This document shows, one piece after another, positions 195 to 30,300 of a DNA stretch of 32,317 bases. The notes below the pieces were generated by a model, which ran no database searches, was not told the origin of the DNA, and saw only the letters and a list, made by a program, of their open reading frames with translations. Location of the stretch: the NCBI GenBank assembly GCA_001642005.1, contig LWCA01000325.1, positions 1 to 32,317 of the forward strand, given 5' to 3'. The stretch comes from Intoshia linei (lineage: Eukaryota > Animalia > Orthonectida). A program made the translations under genes and the position numbers. The stretch's first letter is position 1. Every line of letters begins with the position of its first letter.

Positions 195-3100
195 TTTTCA
201 ATGACAAGCATGACTGACACAAATAATTCACTAAAAGTGATAAAAGTAACACTTGATATGGATTTTTATAAATTTCTTGGAATAAGCATTGTTGGTCAAT
301 CTGATGAACACAGTGATGGTGGTATATATGTTGGCTCAATCAGAAAAGACGGCGCAGTTTATAAGAATGGTAGAATTGACCCAGGCGACATGATTTTGGA
401 AGTCAACAACATTTATTTTGGAAATATAAATAATAACAAAGCTGTAAATTATTTACGTGAAGCAGTCGAGAAAGGAGGGTATTTTTTTAAATATACATAC
501 TATAATGTAGATCATACAAATACAATGTATACTTACATATACTAGGTTGACTGTTATATACCACGTACAAAAAGCACCTAGCTCTGCCGAGGGCACATTA
601 GTAATAAATCTACCAAAAAAATAAATTAGCGTTGAAAATCTAACTTAAAAATCCTACTATTCACTATCATCAATCCTTTAAAGGAGTGGTTCCCAAACTT
701 GTTTTAGGTGGAACTGTGGAACTTTTTACTTTAAAGTAAATTATTCTATCGATTTGATTTTTTGAAAAAAGGAGAATTGGGCTTTTTGACCAGTAAGATG
801 TGAGTTTTGGAGTTTGATATTCATCTTACTAGCACCTGGAAAAAACTTTAATGCTTGTATTTATAGCGTCAGTATTTTAGGTTTTTTTAGGTTAGTTTTT
901 TTTTTAATGAAAATTTAATATTATTACTGTCAGTTTAATTTTTTTACTAACAATTTAATTTTTTTAATGACAAAATATTACTTTATAAAATGTGTTTATT
1001 TCTATATACTTTTTTGTGGAGTAACTTAACATAAACAAAAACTGACAAATATGTAATTGAATACTAATAAAGTACATTATATTACTGACTTTTTAATATT
1101 TACACGGACAATTTTTTTTTAAAATACTGACAGTTTCGGTAATTAAATACTGACAAATAAAAGAGTTCTCAAACTGTAATAGAAATGTGGACTTTAAAAA
1201 ATTCTAAGACTGGTAGTTATTGAAATAAACGATAACACACAGACAAACAAATCATATTATACAAGTAAGGATGTAAGCATTTCAGTCTCACATTTTTATT
1301 TAATTTTCATATTATCGGTTGTTTAAAATACTTAACTAAGACTGACATTTTTACCAATTTTTTAGAATATGATTCCGGCCTCGGCCTTGTGCTTTGTTTA
1401 TACAATAAAAGTTTAGAAAATTAACACTAATGGTTGCAAAATGTTGGAATGATGGAGCAGTAGATTTTAGTCAATCTGAGCAAATGGACGACGAAATTGA
1501 AACCTCGGCATGGACTCAACAAAGTAGGATTTTGAAAAACAAACGTCATTCAATTTCTCTAAAATCGTCAACAGCATCACTGACTAGCTCTTTACCTGAA
1601 ACTGGTAATTTAATTTTCACTTATATTTGAAAGTGGTGGTTTCATCTGTTTTGAACAATGAAAGCTTTTAATATCTCATTTACTATGAATGATTCCTCCA
1701 CAAAGAGTTCATCAACCTGTTTAGGAATAAATTCTGTTATAATTAATATAATCAAAAATTATACTTAAAAATGCTTAGATTTTTGTGGCTTAAACTTAAC
1801 CTCAAATACCGATATGACAACAATAATAAAAGCAATGTGTCAGCCAAACTCTGGATTAATTATCCGCAACCGTTCATGGTTGAAATTAAGTATTCCGAAT
1901 TCTGTAATAGGATCAGACGTAGTAGATTGGCTATACACAAATGTTGATGGGTTTGTTGTACGTAAAGACGCAAAAAAATATGCAGCAAGCTTATTAAAAT
2001 ATGGATATATTATACATTCTGTAGATAAACCCACTTTTTCAGAACAATGCTATTATACTTTCAATACTTCCGTATCCGGTATTTTTGAATAACTGATATT
2101 ATTGTTAATAAGGTTTAATTGTATTTTAATACATGATTCAGTGCTTTCCTATTTTGGGGGTCCTATTTTGAAACATGAGTTTTGAACTATTTAAAAAATT
2201 TTACATACCGAGATTGACCTTTAGAAACATAATACAATGGAAGTATGATATTGGTGAAAATGCATTTATAGTTTCTCTCCACTCAGTTTGGGAAGTTCTG
2301 ACGTAATGTATGATTTATGCATTGTTTTAATGATAATTTTCATGTTGTAGATTTATCAATTATGACAAATGAAAATTTTGAAAATTCCATTTGTTCACCT
2401 TGGAATATATCCTATAAAAATCCGCAGATATTTAATGCACACAATAAAGATAAACCAGAAATTAATATAAAATCAAAATATTTAGTTGGTAAAGGTATAT
2501 AATGTTTTATTAGAGCTGGGGTTCTACACACTATTTATAATTGTTTCAAGTTTGACTATTTTTAGGTCATTAGATTTGAATCTTATTTACATCATGTAAA
2601 TCATATTTCAATTTCATTAAATGACATGTTTTGACTAAAATAATTGATCCCTATTAAGTCTTTATGTTCTTCTATTTCTTCTATTCTCTTTCTCTTCTTC
2701 TATTTATATAATGTTCAGAATGAATTTATTTTATGAATATTTCGCTTCGTTCGTGTAGAACCGTTCTGCGTCTTAATAGGGTACAATGTACGTTCTTTAT
2801 TTAACTTGATGTACTTAGAGACTACTTGTTCTTGCATAATGAAACCAAATTATAAGAAAATTTACAACAAAATTATACCGAAAGCATTGATGAGCGAATC
2901 AAAGGACAAAAAAAACATTGATAAACGGGTCGATAGTAGTAGCAGTGATGATTTTTATTCAACTTATTCATATTGTGATTCTTTTGAAAATAAAGAAAAA
3001 AATTTTAAAAAAAATGATGGTAAATTTTAAAAATATTATTTTAGAATGATTAGTAATAATCATTGATTACATTATTTGTACAAATATTTTACTGTTATTC

Positions 3101-3543
3101 CTAGTTACTTGTTTAGGTTATGTTATATAACCTAACTGATTACAGTAATAAATCGATGCCTAGACGGGACATCAGAATCCTAGTACAACTTGTCGATGTT
3201 TGATACATTTTTTATATATATTTTATTTAGAGTCAATCAATCTTACAAAAAAGCACACAAAAGACAAATGTGTTAATCCTAACAAATATTATTATAACCA
3301 ACACCAGACAAGTGTAGCAAATTACACATATCAGTCAAATTTGCCTAAATTAGTATCATCTGATTCCAATTTCAATGATTCTTGCAATGAGAATGTCAAC
3401 ATAAAATCAAATTTACAAGGTTTTGATTCCGCTTTGGAAAATTTGACACAGCCATCAAAATATATTTCTTTAGGTAAATATACATGTTGAGTCACATTTT
3501 ATACTATACTTTAGAAAATGCAAAATTTACCAATGTTTTATAA
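195..3543 (+). CDS. dvl: Dishevelled (Wnt/PCP scaffold), 3' part; DIX domain presumably upstream of the window. Inferred exons: 195-478, 1417-1604, 1779-2078, 2351-2494, 2819-3019, 3231-3473, 3515-3543
   Basis: PDZ: FLGISIVGQSDEHSDGGIYVGSIRKDGAV...GRIDPGDMILEVN, splicing into GKLTLMVAKCW. DEP: RNRSWLKLSIPNSVIGSDVVDWL...FSEQCYYTF. All joins are in-frame GT-AG, ending ...ENAKFTNVL-TAA (3541-3543). Exons after DEP are supported only by splice phase and open frame. Confidence 0.93.
2139..2300. mobile_element. Degenerate hAT (Charlie/Buster-type) MITE relic in a dishevelled intron
   Basis: Left end CAGTGCTTTCCTATTTTGGGGG and right end CAGTTTGGGAAGTTCTG form imperfect TIRs of the CAGTG(G/C)TTCYCAAAC type. 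Solo ends of the same type occur near 685, 6500 and 26890. Confidence 0.45.
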
Positions 3544-5202: not shown

Positions 5203-5575
5203 TTAAGTAGAACCAAAGTAATCAGTTATTTTTAATGATCTTGCCAATTTTTCAGACTTTATTTCCTGCATTAAAATCCATACACTAGATAATTTTTCTG
5301 GGTTATGAATCATAAAAAATGTTGTTAATTTTTTAGCATGATAATTAGCTTTTAATGGAAAGACATAATGTAACAGGTAAGATTTTTGCGTCTTCAAGTT
5401 CAGACATTAGTAGATTTTCTTCATATGTATTATTTTTTTCAATTTTTATTGTATACATTGTGTTTTGAAGCAAGAAAACGTTGTTTATTACTTTGTCTTC
5501 ATCAACAAAATGAATTAGTTCTTTCTTTGTAGATGCAGCTAAATCTTTTCTTTTTTTTAAATTTTCTTTGTTCAT
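5203..5575 (-). pseudogene. Tigger/pogo transposase remnant: N-terminus fused to C-terminus, frameshifted
   Basis: MNKENLKKRKDLAASTKKELIHFVDE resembles the start of the CENP-B/psq HTH (KRKxLxxxxKxxII). After a frameshift near 5350 it ends ...ARSLKITDYFGST*, like the PIP-box tail (QxKITDFF) of pogo/Tigger transposases. No DDD catalytic domain. Confidence 0.7.
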
Positions 5576-6673
5576 GTTGCAAAAATAAAAAATTTTCGAA
5601 ATGCACGTTTTGTATACAATAATTGTGAATAACAATTAGAACTTCACTTTAATTTGAATAAATCATGTTCATCGTTCACGTAGTAGAATGTTCACGATTC
5701 ATTTACTTTTTTCATAGTAGATGATAACAAATTTTTTTTGTTGTTCATTATTGGAGAAGTTCACGTTATAGAGGGTTCACGTTATAGAGGGTTGACTGTA
5801 ATAGGTTGTGAAATGGAATTTATATCAAATGCATAAACAATTTTAAATACAAGTATTTTAATTGGATATATGATAAAACGTCGACCAGTGATTCTTGATA
5901 GGTGCGCCAGCGCGCGCTGATCCATTTAAAATAAATTTTTATTTTGTAAATATTTTATAGAAAAAAATGTTTGAGTCCAAAATTTGGACTCCAAATTGTC
6001 AAATGAGGCAATTCTTCTTAGAAAGTTATGGAAAAATTAAAAATCTAAACATTCAATAGTCTTAATAGTGTTACAATATATATAACAATTTTCAATGTTA
6101 ACATTCATTTTCAACAAAAAAACTTACTGTTTACCATTTTTTTGTGAAACTTATTTTATTAACAGACGTGATAACAAACAAATGTAAAACAAAAAATTTT
6201 ATATAATTAATGGTCCTAGAATTTAAAAATAAAAAATTATCTTCACATAAATATCAAAACACCAAAATGGTGGTATTGAGGTCTGGATGTAATTATTTTA
6301 AAATAGATTATGTTTATTAAAATTAGGGATTAATTAATTATTAAATTAAAAATTAATTGCCGCTCACTTTAAGACAGTGTTGCTTAACCGGTAAGTCAAA
6401 TATTGTTGAAGTTGAATGTCTTCTTTTTTTTTTATAATAATCATATATTTTTATCACAATTTTGTTAGAGGGCCCAAATAAGGAAGTAATTAGCTAGTAA
6501 AAAAGTAGGGAATCACTACTTTAAGATATTGGTTTTAATTCCTGAGCCAGAAATCCCGACTAAAATATTTAGTCCTGAATATATCAGGTTTCAAAACTCA
6601 TTTGGTCTACATTCCCTTAAAAAAATTTTCTGAAAAAAAGTGCGATCAGTGGTAAAATTTTGAGTCAAAAGTA

Positions 6674-6736
6674 AAAATCAGAGATCTTGGTGGGATGTCA
6701 TCATAACTTCCAGACCAGCATCGTCATCACAATCTT
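6674..6736 (-). ncRNA. Box C/D snoRNA, U24 (SNORD24/snR24)-like D guide, copy 1
   Basis: Minus strand GTGATGA-CGATGCTGGTCTGGAAGTT-ATGATGA-CATCCCACCAAGATCT-CTGA. The 12-nt guide is complementary to conserved 28S AGAUCUUGGUGG; the D+5 rule gives the C equivalent to yeast Cm1437. Confidence 0.88.
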
Positions 6737-6755
6737 AAAATAAGAAAAATATACA

Positions 6756-6821
6756 TGCAATCAGGTAGGGGCGAAGAGACAATCATATTCTGTCAGATCA
6801 ACTATGTTATCATCACATGCA
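6756..6821 (-). ncRNA. Box C/D snoRNA, SNORD80/snR60-like double guide, copy 1
   Basis: TGCA-T-GTGATGA-TAACATAGTTGAT-CTGA-CAGAAT-ATGATT-GTCTCTTCGCCCCTAC-CTGA-T-TGCA, with a 4-bp terminal stem. D guide pairs with 28S UAGGGGCGAA (yeast Gm908 site); D' guide pairs with AACUAUG (yeast Am817 site). Confidence 0.92.
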
Positions 6822-6835
6822 AAAAACAAAATTGC

Positions 6836-6900
6836 TTAAATCAGAGATCTTGGTGGGATGTCATCATAACTTCCAGACAAGTATCGTCATCACAATCTTA
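6836..6900 (-). ncRNA. Box C/D snoRNA, U24-like D guide, copy 2
   Basis: GTGATGA-CGATACTTGTCTGGAAGTT-ATGATGA-CATCCCACCAAGATCT-CTGA. Box C 6887-6893, box D 6841-6844; boxes and D guide identical to copy 1. Confidence 0.88.
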
Positions 6901-6914
6901 AATAAGAAAAATAC

Positions 6915-6986
6915 TAGTGCAATCAGATAGGGGCGAAGAGACAATCATATTCTGTCAGATCAACTATGTTATCATCACATGCACTA
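6915..6986 (-). ncRNA. Box C/D snoRNA, SNORD80/snR60-like double guide, copy 2
   Basis: Perfect 7-bp terminal stem TAGTGCA/TGCACTA, box C 6972-6978, box D 6923-6926. D guide TTCGCCCCTAT is 11 nt complementary to 28S AUAGGGGCGAA. Confidence 0.93.
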
Positions 6987-6995
6987 AATAGATCC

Positions 6996-7056
6996 ATAAA
7001 ATCAGATAAAAGTAGTCCTCATTAAAATCAGAGTAACTATGAAATCATCAATTTAT
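6996..7056 (-). ncRNA. Box C/D snoRNA guiding the 28S helix-69 Am (SNORD46/snR63 target)
   Basis: ATAAA-TTGATGA-TTTCATAGTTACT-CTGA-TTTTA-ATGAGGA-CTACTTTTAT-CTGA-T-TTTAT. The 11-nt D' guide TCATAGTTACT is complementary to 28S AGUAACUAUGA; the +5 rule gives the A equivalent to yeast Am2256. 5-bp terminal stem. Confidence 0.87.
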
Positions 7057-7433
7057 TATATGGATTCAAACACTTTAAAACAATTATCATATTAGTAAAA
7101 TGTAAAAAAAAAATTAAAAATAAAACGAAAATACAAAACACATTGAAAAATGAACGATAATAAATGAACTACTAAACAATGTTTATTATATTTTAATTTA
7201 AACGTAGTTTACATGTTTATTTCTTCAAATTTTCAGTGTGTTCATAACAATATATTTAATATTGAACTTTATCTTATTCCATATTAAATTATTGTAAGTA
7301 ACTAACTAATGAACCAGATTATAACATGATTATACCAGAACCGATAACATACTGAACACCCTCTGCGATGCAATTTTTCAAAAAATTATTTTAAATTATC
7401 AACATTTTTGTGTATATTTATGCCCAGTTTATA

Positions 7434-7446
7434 CACGTGGAAAAGG
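7434..7446 (-). promoter_or_regulatory. Candidate TCT/5'TOP initiator overlapping an E-box, upstream of the snoRNA cluster
   Basis: Minus strand CCTTTTCCACGTG: a YC(+1)TYTYY-type pyrimidine start (+1 about 7445) running into CACGTG (7434-7439), about 390 nt upstream of the first snoRNA. Confidence 0.35.
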
Positions 7447-7878: not shown

Positions 7879-10800
7879 TCAATCCAGACTTAACAAGAGA
7901 GCAGTGCCTCTTTTAATCCAATATTCAGGTGTTTCAGTTCCTGTTTTAAGGTCTACGGAAACGACATATGATGATCTGTAGACATTTCCAGCTCGATTTG
8001 GATAATAGTAACAGGGACAAATATAAATATTTTTTTGGTTTCGTCTTTTAACTTCAGTGGGTTTAAAATGAATTGTAGGCATTGGACTGATTAATTGCAT
8101 TGGGTTTGATTCAATGATTACCGAATTTTTCTTATCCCATGCTGATCCTTGCAAATAAAATCCATTCAAATACACACCTTCCTATATTATTAATATTGTA
8201 CCCGTAAAAATTTTGTAATTATAATTTACCTTTGGTTTTTCTATTATATTGGAATCGTCAACTGTTAAGACATTAAATTCCCAACCCAAAGTGTCAATTG
8301 ATATCTAAAATAATTCAATTATGATAATTAGAATTATTAATTAAATTCGCCTGTCTGGTTATCGAATATAAAACATAATGTATTACAATACAATTACAAT
8401 TAAATTATAAAACTAATAATTACATTTTTATTTCGAACATAAATCTGCAAAACACAAGTTAAAAATCCAGTTGGATAAGTAAATGCAGAAATCCAAAAAA
8501 TATTGGGAGGATGAGCAGTTTCAGCCCATCTATTAAACATTTTGACTCTATTATCTAAGTCTCTAGTCCAGGACCCTAAACTTTTCATGGAAGGATAAAT
8601 AAGTTTCCAATGAGAGGGTACAGTAGCATTAGAAATACATGTAAATATTTCTTCCATTTTAGTGGACATCACAATCAATCCATTTATAGCTTTAATTAAT
8701 TCAGTTAAATTTCCGCGTATTAAATCTAACAAACAATTGTACCGTTCAATTTCTTGTAATAAAACCACATTCAACGGTGAAGTGTCACTTCCGATAATTT
8801 TTTTGGTAGCATCAAAATCAATATTATTAGGAATTTGATTCAATATAATATTACATACACCTAGTACATTCTTTTCAATATTTTCAACAGAGTTACTATA
8901 ATCTTGAGGATGAAGAGATAATAATGTCAAAAATAAATTCTTAGTTTCTTCAATTTGAGAAGTTACCTCAGCATTGACGTGCTGCCCAAAAAGCTCTGGA
9001 ACATCGACAGCTGGTAGTTGTTTTATTAAATCAATATAACTGCTCATTGGCCCATCTTTGGGTATGTAATAGGATGGTAAACTTGTAAGTTTACGTTGTG
9101 GTACATTAATAACTTCATCGTTAAACATGTCATTTATATATGTCATTAAAAGCCTTCTATCAAATTCATCCGTAATGTGACCACCATATGAAATTCCAGC
9201 TATTAAAAATTTAAGAGCTTCCCATGGAGGAGAATCATACTCCTCTAAATATATACATAGAATATTTTCGGATACTTCAAAATCTGAATCATTAAATTCG
9301 TAAGGAATGTTCCATCCAAGCATCATAAACTTTTTCCTTTCTATAATGACAGAATGGAAAAAACAAAGACTGTATAATAATTTTTTATAAGTGCCAATCT
9401 TTTGACATCTTTCAAATTGGTCTTCGTTCAAAAATGAATAAAGACGTTGCATATTTGTAGCTATACCTTTTGGAGGTTCGGTAGTAATTTTGATGCTGCT
9501 TTGGAGTATAGATATCGGGAATTTATCTATTGGTTTACTAGATAACCATAACCGAAAATCTTTATGAGGGTTTTGGTGTTCAATATTTTCAATTATTTTG
9601 TACAATTGAGGCATCCAATCTAGAGAAAGATGACAATTTGCTAAAAATAGCCATACACCTTCTCGAAGGCTTTCTAAAATCATCCTTTTGGCTATCGGTG
9701 CTTGACCTTGGCCTAAAGATAGAGCTTGGAATTTATTGGTCATGTTTACACTATCAGCTAAATTTAATAATGTGGATGTAGGATCAACCCCAGTTGCTAA
9801 GATGAAAATTATAGGTGTGTGACAATTTGATTCTTCGATAATTTGTTGCATAGGTAGTATGGGAGGATTGGTGAAACGTAGTCCTAAACTATTGACAATG
9901 AACATGTTTACACAAAATGCAACGCGATCAGATCTTAAAGACCTTACAATCAATATTTTTTGTAATTCGTTACACCCATTGTCCCATTCTCCTGGTAATG
10001 GTGTCGTTTCAGGTGAACTGGATGTGAACCAAATGTGCCAATCTCGTGCATACTGCTCAAAAGAACTGATAATACCATGAAAATTTGGCAATTTGTCCAA
10101 TTCAGATATGTTATCCCATGAAGAATCAGGCAGCCAATTTGAACAGGGATTGTCCATTTGATTTTCTCTATTTACCACAATTCCACCACGTAGAAAAAAG
10201 TTGTACTCGTCTTTATTTAATTTCCCTGCAGCCTCAATGATTTTAATACACATGTGGAAAGAAAACATAATTTTATGCCTTTTAAACAAACCACGACAAA
10301 CAAATTTATAAACCGCATAAGTATGATAATTATTTAAATTAAGTATCCTTTCTTCCAATTTAGTAGTTTTGGGACTTGCCAAAATGGAATCAATAAATAA
10401 TGCAATATACGAATCTAATGAAAATTGGTACATTGGATCAATTTTACCCATATCGTTTAATACAAAAAATAAAATTGACCCCCTTTCCGCGCATGGCGCA
10501 TATGCTTGTCGAGCAATGTCTATATTTTTTTCAGTTTTTTCGGCGATTTTTAATTGATCTGAAATTTCCTGTGATGTTTCTTTCGACGTTTGTAGAGTAT
10601 TTATTAAATTTTCATCATCCAATAAAGACCCTGTGGCATCGTTTAATAGTTTTAATATTTCACTTTCCAAATTTTTAAATTTTTTCTTTTTGGAAGCTAT
10701 GCTCAGCACTAGACTGTCCTTTTGTTCTTCTAATTCAGGTTTTTCCTTTCTAACGACAATCCCCAAAAGCTGATATTGTAGACCTTGCTCTTTAACAGCA

Positions 10801-25800: not shown

Positions 25801-27237
25801 TTCAGAAGAAGAAATGACATTTTCAATTCCACTTGATACTTTTGCAAAATAATAAAATTGACTGACTTCATATCTTGGAACATCGTATTGCACGGTAAGA
25901 CCGTTCAAAGTGTCCATGAAAATTATTAGCACATATTTTTCTTTATTCACCAAATATTCATTTATTATATTTCCGTGGCTTTCGTCCCACATGTGATATC
26001 TGTACTGACTTAATATCACCTTTTTCTTGATCCAGTTTACCTTAATTATAACATTAGTATTAGTAAAAATATTAGCTAAAAATATATATATTATTTCCTG
26101 TAGGTCACTTAAATTGAAATATTAAAAACTACTACAAAATTAATTGAAGAAGGTTACCGAAGGGTATTGAAAATTAATTAATAATTAATAAAAAATTACA
26201 GCTGATACAGTTATGTCCAGTTAACACAATAAAACAGTTTCAATCTAACAAAATGACGCCTTCACGATCAAAAAGGCACTTAAGTAGTTATTTTTTTATT
26301 TGGAACCTATTTTATTAACATCAATTAACAAAAAATTTTGAATAATTAACGGTCCTAAAATTAAAAAAATGTATTCTGATACAGCTTATTCCATTTAATA
26401 TAAATGCAAAATTTCAACCCCAGACATCTACTCCTTCCCAATGGCAATAGCTTTTAATATATTATCAACCAACATTTTTCAAAGTTTTGGATTAAAATTA
26501 AAAACGAAAATGTAAATATTGATCCTACAATTTAAAAAAAAATGGGAATTGACGGTATTAACATTTGAAATACAAAAATATGAGTTTCAATCTCATAAAT
26601 TGATTCCCTCAAATTTTTTATCATTGCTATGTAGTTTCTTATTTTCAAAAAATTTCAAGTTTATAATAAGATGCAATAGAACTTTGTTACAATCATATTG
26701 AGATATCAATGTTGGAAACATTCACCCGACATATGTTTTTAAATATGCTGACTTCTTTATTTATTGATACAAAATATTTTTTACTTACTTATTATATTAT
26801 TTTAATATTATGGAAAGTAGTTACTGAATTGATAATAATTTTTTGTTGATTGATATTTTATATCAGCTTTTACACCCTCCTCTCCCCAAATTGGGAAACA
26901 CTGGTTTAAATATATCCATGAATAATTGAATAATCTGAACAAGACAAATTATTAATCCTATATTAATTTTCATGAAAATCGTGATAAAAACGAAATTTAT
27001 TAAATTAATCATGATAAAAAAATATAGATTAAAACTGATATAGATACAATTAATTGATATTATTATTTAAATTTTAAATACATTAAAAATTAAAAAAAGG
27101 TACCATATATACAAAATCTTCACTATCGAAATCGATATTTTCCGATTCATGTATACTCGAATCTAATATTAACAATTAAATTACTATAAAATACCCAAAT
27201 TACATTCTATATTTTGTGAATTTGTAACTGATGGCAT
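7879..27237 (-). CDS. DNAH2: Axonemal inner-arm dynein heavy chain 2 (I1/f beta), about 4459 aa. 23 inferred exons: 27204-27237, 27104-27162, 25686-26040, 24912-25076, 24467-24705, 24239-24430, 23911-24156, 22994-23874, 21671-22125, 21369-21481, 21189-21320, 20930-21141, 20006-20864, 15849-19358, 14276-15158, 14071-14238, 13872-14032, 13522-13661, 13347-13479, 13162-13301, 8424-12348, 8230-8304, 7879-8181
   Basis: Tail (IIHWTRQIKE, PLEEIEFW), linker (FPRFYFLSNEDLLEIL), AAA1 GPAGTGKT and CFDEFNR, AAA2 GSSMSGKS, AAA3 GPTGTGKT, AAA4 GIGGSGRQS, stalk/MTBD, AAA5-6. The C-terminus CPCYYYPNRAG...WIKRGTALLLSLD is DNAH2-type. The exons sum to 13380 nt in a consistent frame with GT-AG joins. The first two small exons are less certain. 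Confidence 0.95.
12648..13081. mobile_element. hAT (Charlie/Buster-type) MITE in a DNAH2 intron, containing a nested fragment of the AGAGCYGAACCTA family near 12795
   Basis: AGTGGTTCTCAACCT ... AGGTTGAGAAACCATG. Flanks GTCAAATA and GTCATATA look like a decayed 8-bp TSD. Confidence 0.7.
15332..15688. mobile_element. MITE with ~85-bp imperfect inverted ends (AGAGCYGAACCTA family)
   Basis: Left GCTGAATCTA...TTTTTGTAAAATAAGAGCCTCATTTTTCCAAATTGAGCAT versus right-end reverse complement GCCGAATCAA...TTTTTGTAAAATGGTCCCTCATTTTCCCAAATTCAACAT. Confidence 0.75.
25178..25454. mobile_element. hAT-like MITE (AGAGCYGAACCTA family)
   Basis: Perfect TIR core AGCCGAACCTA / TAGGTTCGGCT. Flanks TCTTAAAG and TCTCAAAC match 6/8, consistent with an 8-bp TSD. 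Left arm is homologous to copies at 12795, 15332 and 28149. Confidence 0.75.
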
Positions 27238-27391: not shown

Positions 27392-30300
27392 ATGACTGGT
27401 TTTAAAGATAACATATTTAAAAAAACTACATCTTCAAATAATAATATTAAAGTATTATTAAATTATGAAACCTTAAATAATAATCATTATAGAATGAAAA
27501 AGAAATTAACACTATTGATCGTTGGCCAAACACGGACAGAAAACCTAAATTTTTATCTGAAGTTGAAAAATGGTTAAAAAACGAAGTTGAACTGTTGCAA
27601 ATAAATTTACCCAAAAGAGCTCTATCTTATAAAAATTATAAAGAAAGTTATAAATCCATGTTGCAACCATACCAAGAAGCTTTTGATTACATTATTAATA
27701 ATTTAACTACCTATAAACCCATTTTAAGTGAAATCAAACTAGCGTATGATCGAGAGTATAACAAATTAATTGACTGTTTGAAGGAATTTGAACCGTTAAG
27801 GGTTTATTAGTTTTATGTGGGGTTTATTTAATTTTAGAAAAATATTTTTGAAACTCAAGAACACTTTGATCAAAAATTAAAAAAAATTAGAATTAAAGAT
27901 AATGTAGGTAAATTTTTTTGTTTTTTCCAATTATTGTTTCCTTGTTTAGATATTGAAATAATGAAAAAAGAAAAGATTGAATTGTTAAGAGTAATGGATA
28001 TTTTAAGAGGGGAAAATGAATCTTTTGCAGTACAAATTATGCAATTTAAAAAAGAATTAAAAGAAAATTATAGAAAATTTAACGTAATATATTTGGATGA
28101 GTGTAGTCACTGCAGTGCAGTGCATTTATGCATTTTATTGAATGTGTGCAGAGCTGAACCTACCGTAACGACCTATGTTGGGACCTCGAATCAATTTTTG
28201 AGATTTTCAAAATTAGAGTTACATTGTAGCTACAAATAACTATTGTATTATGTGCGTAAAAATGAACATTTAAGTCCAAAATTTGGACTCCAAACCCGTG
28301 CACGCGTTTGGGTTATCCGATATTACACATTGTTTGTGTAATTTTTTTGAGAGCTAATTTTGGATTAGATTTGATTTGATGGAAAAATAAAACCTACGGT
28401 TTACTATTTTATTAAGTCCATCATTAACTAATGCTATTTTATATTATGATATTTTTTAGATTGATAAGCATTATTTTAAATAGCAAACACATACAAGTGC
28501 TTTTTCAACATCAAACTTCTGATTTCCGATTTTTACAGTTATATCTAGTAAACGCACACAAAAAATTTTAATCTGTCAAAGTGAGGCCTTGATAGTCAAA
28601 AAACACTTGAGTTTAATTTTATTTTAAACATTTTATTAAAAAAAATTTAAATTGGTGTTAATCATGATTGACATCATAAATTCAAACATCATTAACCCTT
28701 TCACTGTCTGTGTATTCTATACTATACACAGCAATTTCACTTAACACGTCTGTATTCTATGATATACACAACATAATTATCTATAGAAACAAAATAAAAG
28801 CTTATGATGTATTATGTATACATAAAATAAAGTTATATTTTAAATTTATCCTAAAATTTTTGTATGAATTTCAATAATTACATTAGGAGGGGGTAAATAT
28901 TAACCCATTTTATTTTTTTGGACATAAATGCTTTAAATCAAAAAAGGTACCCACATGCAAAATGGGTTTTCTTATACAAAAAACATCAAAAGTGGACACA
29001 CTACTGTGTTTTTTCGATTATAACAAGTTTTCCTATATTCGAAAGTAGAAGGGAAAATGCTTATAATCAAAAACAAGCAGAATTTTATGCAGACCTTGAA
29101 AAATATAAAAATACACTAAAATTTTTTTTCTAATTAGTATAAACTTTTAAATTAGACATTCTATTATATGAAGGAAGTTATTTTTTAGAAATAAATTGAA
29201 ATTTTGTCTATTTTTTGTTTAAAGTTCTTTATTTCGGATACAAGCAGAAACTGCTTATATTCAAATTTTATTTAGTTAAAAATTTCACTAAAAATTTGTA
29301 TTTTAGGGGTCTGCTTATAATCGAGAAAAGACAGTAGAGTCCATACATACTGTTATCTCCATTTCATACACACAAAAAATCCTAGTTATATGAGTTATAT
29401 ATTAGCACTAAAGTTTGGGCTCTGCATGCATAGCATATTTAAAAAACTAATAAAAAACCCATAGGACGTGAACGACTCTAGAAAACTATTAATTATCGAG
29501 ATAAATGACTTGAAAAACCAACAAAACGATTTAGAAATAGCTCAAAACATAACAAAACAAATTAAAAGCGATTCGAGCCAGGATCCAGTAACATTAGCAG
29601 TTGAATTGAAATGTCTACGAAGAGACGAAGCTAGAACCCGTCAAGAACTTATAGAAATGCAAGCAAATTACAGCGACGTTGTGTCTCGTCGAATCTACGA
29701 ATCTATAAAAAATGAATGCGATGAAACTAAAGAAAAATTTAAAACAATTTCGAGTGAATTGAAAAAACTAACCAACGAACAAAGCATTTTAAAACAAGAA
29801 TATGAAAAAATAATAATAGAAAGAGATGAATTACGTCAATCTGAAGAACATTTAAAACGATCAGCTACACCTAGACCAAACTGGGATAATTTGGTTGGTA
29901 AAGAATTTAAAGGTGGACTAAAAAAGTGGAAAAAATATTCTAATAAAAAAACATCCAATGACAAGTTAAAATTAATTTTACAAAATTTTTCATACAATTT
30001 GTTTCCATTCAATTTTCATAAACCAATTTATAAAAATACCGATAATGAAAATAAAATTTTTTCACCATTCAATAATAAATCTGCAGATAAAAACAATACA
30101 AATAGTGATAAATATGATGTATATTTACAAATTGATAAAAATTATTGGGACGTATTGTGTAATTTTGGAATTGACAGTTTTGATGCAAATTTTAATGAAA
30201 TGAATAATGCTAAATTACAACTTAGTCAAGACGCGTCTCCAAAAAAAACTTTGGCGGGTCAAAATAAAAAACCAAAGACACTTTCTAGACAATTGACTAG

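Follow-up and report, generated by a model that had tools for sequence, protein, structure and literature searches.

A tight cluster of five box C/D snoRNA units on one predicted precursor in the compact genome of the orthonectid Intoshia linei

Polycistronic clusters of box C/D snoRNA genes are standard in plants, yeast and trypanosomes, and intronic snoRNA gene clusters were reportedly described in rice by Liang et al. in 2002. The vertebrate counterparts of the guides treated here lie in separate hosts, namely RPS8, GAS5 and RPL7A. Apart from yeast Rnt1 and Xenopus XendoU, no endonuclease is known to separate co-hosted snoRNAs in an animal. Most animal snoRNAs are found one per intron (PMC10557570), as the original prediction for this DNA had stated; the contrast that it drew between animals and the polycistronic lineages was, however, overstated, because multi-snoRNA introns are numerous in Drosophila according to PMC3089462. 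Numerous intronic snoRNA clusters in this fly are also credited to Huang et al. 2004/2005 in PMC3089462 and PMC5932544, and an animal can therefore process such introns. For the orthonectids, a literature search found no paper on snoRNAs and no snoRNA annotation.

Here, we analysed a 32,317-nt stretch of Intoshia linei DNA, referred to as the window (contig C394), from an assembly of 41.6 Mb in 3520 contigs with a GC content of ~27%. The host is an animal with a very compact genome, the median intron of which measures 57 bp (PMC6543705). Strand reading and box location revealed five box C/D snoRNA units at 6674-7065 on the minus strand. The units are of three kinds: one is snR63/SNORD46-like (U1), two are snR60/Z15/SNORD80-like (U2 and U4) and two are U24/SNORD24-like (U3 and U5). 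In the predicted order of transcription, the units and the gaps between them are as follows.

6992..7065 (core ~6997-7055), - strand: U1, snR63/SNORD46-type, assigned from its boxes and from a D' guide on A3490 of the species' own 28S; box C at 7050, D' at 7031, C' (TGAGGA) at 7021, D at 7005
6916..6985, - strand: U2, snR60/Z15/SNORD80-type, with a full-length match to the RF00309 model (36.8 bits, E 2.7e-4), a D guide on G2098 and a weak D' guide near A2007; box C at 6977, D' at 6958, C' (TGATTG) at 6947, D at 6926
6836..6900, - strand: U3, U24/SNORD24-type, with an RF00069 match (25.8 bits, E 0.08) and a D guide on C2625; box C at 6892, a D'-like CTGG, C' at 6866, D at 6844
6753..6824, - strand: U4, second snR60/Z15-type copy, with a full-length alignment to RF00309 (30.1 bits) and a 10-bp pairing from guide position 2; box C at 6815, D' at 6796, C' at 6785, D at 6764
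6674..6737, - strand: U5, second U24-type copy, with an RF00069 match (25.2 bits) and a D guide identical to that of U3; box C at 6729, C' at 6703, D at 6681
6978-7001, 6893-6922, 6816-6840 and 6730-6760, - strand: the four inter-unit gaps, from the end of box D to the start of the next box C, with presumed endonucleolytic separation sites within 6738..7001

Each of the units retains an intact box C (TGATGA) and box D (CTGA) at a distance of 49-55 nt, which is the general box arrangement of C/D RNAs and implies that the mature RNAs would be ~59-65 nt long. A purine precedes box C in U2-U5, as in the consensus RUGAUGA, and a T stands there in U1. Clear D' (CTGA) and degenerate C' boxes characterise U1, U2 and U4, while in U3 and U5 C' is perfect and D' is replaced by CTGG, in line with the degenerate D' that had been noted for the U24-like pair. 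The description of the five units as hidden in an apparent tandem repeat was borne out not only by the boxes but also by TRF, which finds a 162-bp tandem repeat (1.9 copies, 95% matches) at 6675-6983 that corresponds to the duplicated pair U2-U3 and U4-U5; U4-U5 is a recent duplicate of U2-U3. The terminal stems that had been ascribed to most units are clear in U2 (-9.7 kcal/mol, 6-7 bp) and U4 (-4.6 kcal/mol) upon folding; in U1, a weak inner stem is accompanied by a 7-bp outer one (7059-7065/6992-6998) in the whole-cluster fold, and the stems of U3 and U5 are negligible (-0.2 and -0.5 kcal/mol).

The inter-unit gaps measure 24, 30, 25 and 31 nt from box to box, which is consistent with the spacers of 9-19 nt originally given, once the terminal-stem bases are removed. 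The gaps are rich in T (50-58%), and folding gave energies from -0.4 to -2.7 kcal/mol and revealed no extended stem. No Rnt1/RNase III-type stem-loops (AGNN), as used in yeast, were found in any of the four gaps, and the weakness of even the best fold (-2.7 kcal/mol) agrees with the proposal that the spacers are too short for hairpins of this type. The locus resembles the polycistrons of plants, yeast and trypanosomes in that it has several different co-oriented C/D genes, one presumed promoter, U-rich spacers, a duplication within the cluster and a need for endonucleolytic separation, whereas it differs from them in its far shorter gaps (24-31 nt), its lack of AGNN stem-loops and its animal host.

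An Rfam scan of the whole window at gathering thresholds returned nothing, and an E-value scan returned C/D families exclusively across 6671-7065, all on the minus strand and all below their gathering scores. For both RF00309 and RF00069 this score is 41 bits, which was not reached by U2 or U4 in the first family, nor by U3 or U5 in the second. The families that had been proposed are therefore upheld in part: snR60/SNORD80 and U24 are the best Rfam matches, although sub-threshold, but U1 matches no specific Rfam family, and its SNORD46 assignment comes from its guide alone. The RF00309 matches at U2 and U4 are the sole ones in the genome. Other genomic matches to SNORD24 were dropped as snoRNA candidates, as they lack boxes, and a search for the SNORD14 family returned nothing.

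We then compared the guides with the species' own partial 28S on contig C1 (locus L001), taking the fifth pair of the guide upstream of box D or D' as the target nucleotide. Antisense elements of at least 10 nt next to the box, with the target at the fifth pair, were found for the D' guide of U1 and the D guides of U2-U5. As in snR63/SNORD46, the D' guide of U1 pairs with AGUAACUAUGA; this pairing is perfect over 11 bp (L001:3486-3496) and places A3490, the equivalent of yeast Am2256, at position 5. A3490 lies in a conserved 28S segment of 27 nt, for which the genome contains one exact match only. Unlike that family, U1 is without Rfam support, and its D guide is an orphan with no target in the available 28S. 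A search with a sarcin-ricin-loop pattern found no match, so the assembly seems to lack the 3' third of the 28S.

U2 and U4 share with snR60/Z15/SNORD80 (RF00309) a double-guide layout, with a D element on UAGGGGCGAA, the site equivalent to Gm908, and a weakly pairing D' element on GAACUAUG, the site equivalent to Am817. The D guide of U2 forms 11 bp from L001:2094 and, after a one-base bulge, 4 further pairs; that of U4, which differs from U2 at guide position 1, forms 10 bp from position 2 and again 4 further pairs after a one-base bulge. Both place G2098 at position 5. The D' guide common to U2 and U4 is weaker: on GGUGAACUAUGCC it starts with G-U and A-U pairs, continues with a G-G mismatch at position 3 and seven Watson-Crick pairs, and has A2007 at position 5, so that the mismatch lies two nucleotides from the target nucleotide, and mismatches are also found past position 10. 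This weakened D' duplex sets the two units apart from snR60/Z15/SNORD80, as do their length (~65 nt against a 98-position model) and their presence as two tandem copies in one cluster.

U3 and U5 resemble U24/SNORD24 (RF00069) in a 12-nt D guide that pairs perfectly with AGAUCUUGGUGG (L001:2621-2632) and places C2625, the equivalent of Cm1437, at position 5. The D' element of yeast U24 directs Am1449 and Gm1450; here, the D' guide has been lost, with U3 and U5 both decayed in this region and differing from each other at 2 positions. Further departures from U24/SNORD24 are the CTGG in place of box D', the absence of a stable terminal stem and a location outside any RPL7A or ASC1-type host intron.

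In yeast, Am817 and Gm908 are directed by snR60, Cm1437 by U24 and Am2256 by snR63 (PMC5199042). The distances between the target nucleotides agree with these identities: A2007 and G2098 of the species' own 28S are 91 nt apart, exactly as are positions 817 and 908 in yeast, and G2098 and C2625 are 527 nt apart, compared with 529 nt in yeast. We consider the predicted assignments of A3490, G2098 and C2625 as the equivalents of Am2256, Gm908 and Cm1437 to be solid, while U2 and U4 may possibly guide the Am817 equivalent A2007, if weakly. Thus, of the four methylation sites originally named, Am2256, Gm908 and Cm1437 stand, with 10-12 bp of perfect pairing on the species' own 28S, but Am817, with its seven Watson-Crick pairs and position-3 mismatch, does not stand equally firmly.

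Complementarity of this kind is rare in the window, where 9 of 180 CTGA sites in total follow a stretch of 10 nt or more that is perfectly complementary to the species' own rRNA. Five of the eight D and D' boxes of the cluster show at least 10 nt of rRNA complementarity, compared with 4 of the 172 other CTGA sites; from this background, our own arithmetic gives a binomial p of ~4e-7, indicating that the pattern exceeds chance. The two 162-nt repeat copies are separated by nine differences (substitutions or indels), which fall in spacers, stem flanks, guide position 1 and the decayed D' region, and none of which affects a box or the verified guide positions 2-12. With 67 of the 162 repeat positions constrained, the probability of such avoidance is ~0.008 (own arithmetic), suggesting selection on both copies. 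When the whole genome was searched at the DNA level for paralogues, the cluster matched only itself, and no further copies of its snoRNAs were found in the genome by DNA or Rfam-family searches, so the units are probably working genes. As a sequence feature, the cluster is real, and the original prediction had identified it correctly. A reading of the locus as decaying pseudogenes, or as a chance satellite with snoRNA-like motifs, might appeal to the Rfam scores, all below gathering, to the degenerate state of some guides and to the mostly decayed copies of a U18 array in RPL3 of the same genome; it is hardly credible, given box C and box D intact in five of five units, three guides perfect on the species' own 28S at known methylation sites, repeat-copy differences that spare functional positions, and guides without other genomic copies.

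The cluster is not the only one of its kind in the genome. We searched genome-wide for box C, box D and a next box C within 16-36 nt, with a reversed control; the pattern gave 15 forward matches against 0 in the control. The 15 matches fall in 13 places: three belong to the cluster at 6674-7065, four places are snoRNA-like, three of which were read and confirmed as clusters, and six look like chance matches in coding sequence. The three further tight C/D clusters, all confirmed by direct reading, are listed below.

Contig C475: tight C/D cluster of three units
Contig C1991: tight C/D cluster of about six units, including a SNORD34-like one, with beta-tubulin exon 1 ~970 nt downstream
Contig C1079: tight C/D cluster of two units

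These three clusters have no flanking coding exons. In addition, U18-like units form a tandem array in intron 1 of RPL3, which is at least 1 kb long, compared with the genome's median intron length of 57 bp. No U14 array was detected by TRF or Rfam in the eight HSP70 loci that were scanned. SnoRNA clustering is therefore recurrent in this genome, both in introns of protein genes and in non-coding DNA.

Gaps of 24-31 nt make internal exons or promoters implausible, which argues for a single precursor for all five units. The gaps are also U-rich and free of hairpins, and the earlier statement that the spacers cannot hold an exon with its splice sites is confirmed by their length. Co-transcription on one precursor is, on this reading of the sequence, a sound inference, and endonucleolytic processing of that precursor would be a reasonable one. 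The surroundings of the cluster offer the following features.

About 200-3500, + strand: Dishevelled-like gene with PDZ and DEP exons, domains read from translations
Stop codon at 7879, - strand: dynein heavy chain gene, ending ~820 nt upstream of the snoRNA cluster
7428..7439, - strand: CACGTG E-box followed directly by TATAAA, a candidate promoter for the transcript of the cluster, 389 nt ahead of the first box C
6630..6660, - strand: candidate branch point, polypyrimidine tract and CAG 3' splice site (AG 6631-6630, tract 6631-6645), by direct reading
6553..6563, - strand: the 11-mer TTAGTCGGGAT, 114 nt beyond the last box D

The minus strand contains no open reading frame of at least 50 aa between 5636 and 7717, according to an open reading frame scan. 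A Pfam search of the small downstream open reading frames at 5203-5575 gave no matches and hence no hint of a translation-related host. In the splice-like tract, a branch-point-like CTGAT is followed by pyrimidines up to a CAG, 47 nt past the last box D, and the cluster may therefore simply be a multi-snoRNA intron. The tract resembles the 3' splice sites in dynein, RPL3 and beta-tubulin introns of the same genome. For the 5' splice site there are several GT candidates at 7200-7340, none preferable over the others. The CACGTG at 7428..7439 is the only one in the window.

T-rich tracts ending in CAG are not rare in a genome of 27% GC. Two further candidate signals were dropped: the spacing of TATAAA upstream of clusters was not significant, and T-rich words shared upstream of four clusters, among them TTCATTTTTCA, which two clusters have at about -100, were within AT-rich chance.

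Taken together, the splice-like tract, the lack of an open reading frame of at least 50 aa and the E-box/TATA pair lead us to prefer a non-coding host in which the cluster occupies a single intron, and the snoRNA array within RPL3 intron 1 of the same genome was counted in favour of an intron. We give roughly even chances to the proposal that the precursor would be one long intron (~580-700 nt) of a short non-coding host like UHG or GAS5. Such a host would share with UHG, GAS5 and Drosophila Uhg the lack of coding potential around the snoRNAs and possibly a short transcript driven by a growth-type E-box promoter; unlike them, where each intron carries one snoRNA, it would carry five in one intron. 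With the intronic clusters of Drosophila and rice it would have in common more than one snoRNA per intron, with a plausible 3' splice site close behind the cluster. The Drosophila clusters are described as H/ACA in PMC3089462, whereas all five units here are C/D and packed far tighter, in what is a candidate intron.

We consider it likely that the locus encodes five C/D guides of ~59-65 nt, from three ancient families, on one Pol II precursor, and that these direct 28S methylation at three sites and perhaps, if weakly, at a fourth. In the scheme that we infer for transcription, host-gene structure, cleavage, discrete small RNAs and methylation alike, the host transcript would start near the E-box/TATA pair at ~7430, the exon would resume at the CAG at 6631, and RNA polymerase II would make a single precursor carrying all five snoRNAs. 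An endonuclease would then cut the U-rich, single-stranded spacers, either once the intron had been spliced out and debranched or while the RNA was still nascent, and exonucleases would trim every piece back to its snoRNP. Exonucleases alone could not take apart units that are all shielded by their own snoRNPs, which means that cleavage in the spacers would be required, unless concatemers persist. Each snoRNA would finally join a fibrillarin snoRNP and direct 2'-O-methylation of large-subunit rRNA.

An intron is not the only form that such a precursor could take. The other three tight clusters of the genome also lie in non-coding DNA, and their lack of flanking coding exons makes an independent, unspliced polycistronic Pol II transcript a real alternative; as in plants, yeast and trypanosomes, its capped 5' leader and its 3' trailer would be removed by endonucleolytic entry and exonucleases. 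We regard this as possible, though doubtful. The present cluster is likewise not flanked by coding exons, it has a possible dedicated promoter 389 nt upstream, and the rare 11-mer found downstream of two clusters could be a common 3'-end element; a good polypyrimidine-CAG tract 47 nt past the last unit speaks against it, however, as do the snoRNA arrays in real introns of the same genome. Moreover, independent Pol II snoRNA units of animals are mostly U3, U8 and U13 (PMC10557570). A more distant source would be the dynein heavy chain gene, from which the cluster could be processed as read-through or as part of an extended 3' UTR. This gene is close by and on the same strand, but ATTAAA-type poly(A) signals lie ~30 nt or less from its stop codon, the E-box/TATA pair stands between it and the cluster, and a cilium-specific gene would be an odd driver for housekeeping guides, all of which makes this origin very unlikely.

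Whatever the precursor, the units might also stay joined, with exonucleases halted at the outermost snoRNPs, as a stable multi-snoRNP RNA of ~370 nt or as dimers or trimers, and act as a multi-guide particle like mammalian sno-lncRNAs or tandem C/D scaRNAs. In mammals, two snoRNA genes in one intron are the prerequisite for a sno-lncRNA and do not necessarily yield two free snoRNAs (PMC4234469). The very short spacers, which have no recognisable nuclease signal, would suit such a product, and a six-frame genome search for XendoU (PF09412) detected no homologue, although this search ran without a positive control and is therefore not evidence of absence. Plant clusters with comparably plain U-rich spacers are, however, established to yield monomers, every unit here has its own complete set of C/D and C'/D' boxes, and U1, U2 and U4 have terminal stems of their own, so that we think persistent joining improbable.

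With separate snoRNAs from one intron-borne precursor as the preferred reading, we class the five units as new members of established snoRNA families. Their arrangement is also of a known type, not previously described in this lineage. The gene class was to be expected, and the arrangement has precedents in plants, yeast and, as far as introns are concerned, Drosophila; what is unusual is the degree of compaction, together with five C/D guides on one predicted animal precursor. The cluster adds three conserved rRNA methylation guides, and hence three predicted Nm sites, to the lineage, and it illustrates the degree to which C/D genes, and the distances between them, can be reduced when an animal genome is compacted. 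If the products are true monomers, the unstructured spacers of 24-31 nt would offer a clean natural substrate for identifying the separating endonuclease.

On a broader and frankly speculative view, to which we assign a low probability, much of the C/D repertoire of this animal would have moved into plant-like, ultra-compact polycistronic cassettes, with RNAs of 59-65 nt and gaps of at most 31 nt. A spacer endonuclease that acts independently of structure, and is distinct from both RNase III and XendoU, might resolve these cassettes, or they might persist as multi-snoRNP concatemers, and the rare 11-mer that clusters share might be a processing or termination signal. This 11-mer has 6 copies in the genome compared with 74 for its reversed control, and two of these copies lie downstream of a C/D cluster on its own strand.

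Closely packed box C/D snoRNA units are found at other places in the 41.6-Mb Intoshia linei assembly:

Contig C475, ~25880-26120 (locus L029), - strand: cluster of three C/D units, with gaps of ~15-45 nt
Contig C1991, ~6250-6745 (locus L031, 1750-2245), + strand: roughly six small C/D units, clustered
Contig C1079, ~28745-28910 (locus L030, 2245-2410), + strand: two near-identical C/D units ~35 nt apart in non-coding DNA

In the C475 cluster, two copies of a unit whose guide is similar to the U27-type element that pairs with the 5' end of 18S flank a different unit. The C1991 cluster contains three kinds of unit, duplicated, one of them SNORD34-like (E 0.035), and is followed ~970 nt downstream by exon 1 of beta-tubulin on the same strand.

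The 11-mer TTAGTCGGGAT occurs six times in the 41.6-Mb genome, versus 74 occurrences of the reversed control, and two of these six copies lie just downstream of tight C/D clusters on the same strand:

Window 6553-6563, - strand: TTAGTCGGGAT, 114 nt after the last box D of the window cluster
Contig C475, 25877-25887, - strand: TTAGTCGGGAT, 8 nt beyond the final box D of the C475 cluster

Around these two cluster-associated copies, no similarity was detected beyond the 11-mer itself.

Two features lie on either side of the window cluster:

Window 7428-7439, - strand: CACGTG E-box with TATAAA immediately 3' of it, at a distance of 389 nt upstream from the cluster
Window 5203-5575, - strand: small, two-exon-looking ORF, ~1 kb downstream of the cluster

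The E-box/TATAAA pair, whose CACGTG is the single occurrence in the 32-kb window, may serve as promoter for the transcript that carries the cluster. Since the ORF lies ~1 kb downstream on the same strand, the cluster could be situated in a 5' UTR intron of this ORF, for which no Pfam match was obtained. Read from its sequence, the C-terminus of the ORF, KITDYF, is reminiscent of a PCNA-interacting (PIP) box.

The former D' guides of the two U24-like copies (window 6876-6886 and 6713-6723, - strand) differ from each other at two positions and match the Am1449/Gm1450-equivalent region only imperfectly. A genome-wide search returned no further U24 candidate, and the Am1449- and Gm1450-equivalent methylations may therefore be lost or guided by other means.

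The partial 28S used as pairing reference (L001) ends with contig C1, near model position 2254, and a sarcin-ricin-loop pattern had no match across the assembly. Contig C368 contains, internally, another and shorter LSU-like fragment (L002; 17002-18013, 546 bits), which may be a pseudogene, may have been inserted or may come from foreign DNA.

Finally, intron 1 of RPL3, split over two contig ends (C2396, 78467-79068, and C1546, 52795-53215), carries a tandem array of U18-like units with a period of roughly 90 nt, several of which have a degenerate box C. This intron is at least 1 kb long; the median intron in the I. linei genome is 57 bp (PMC6543705).
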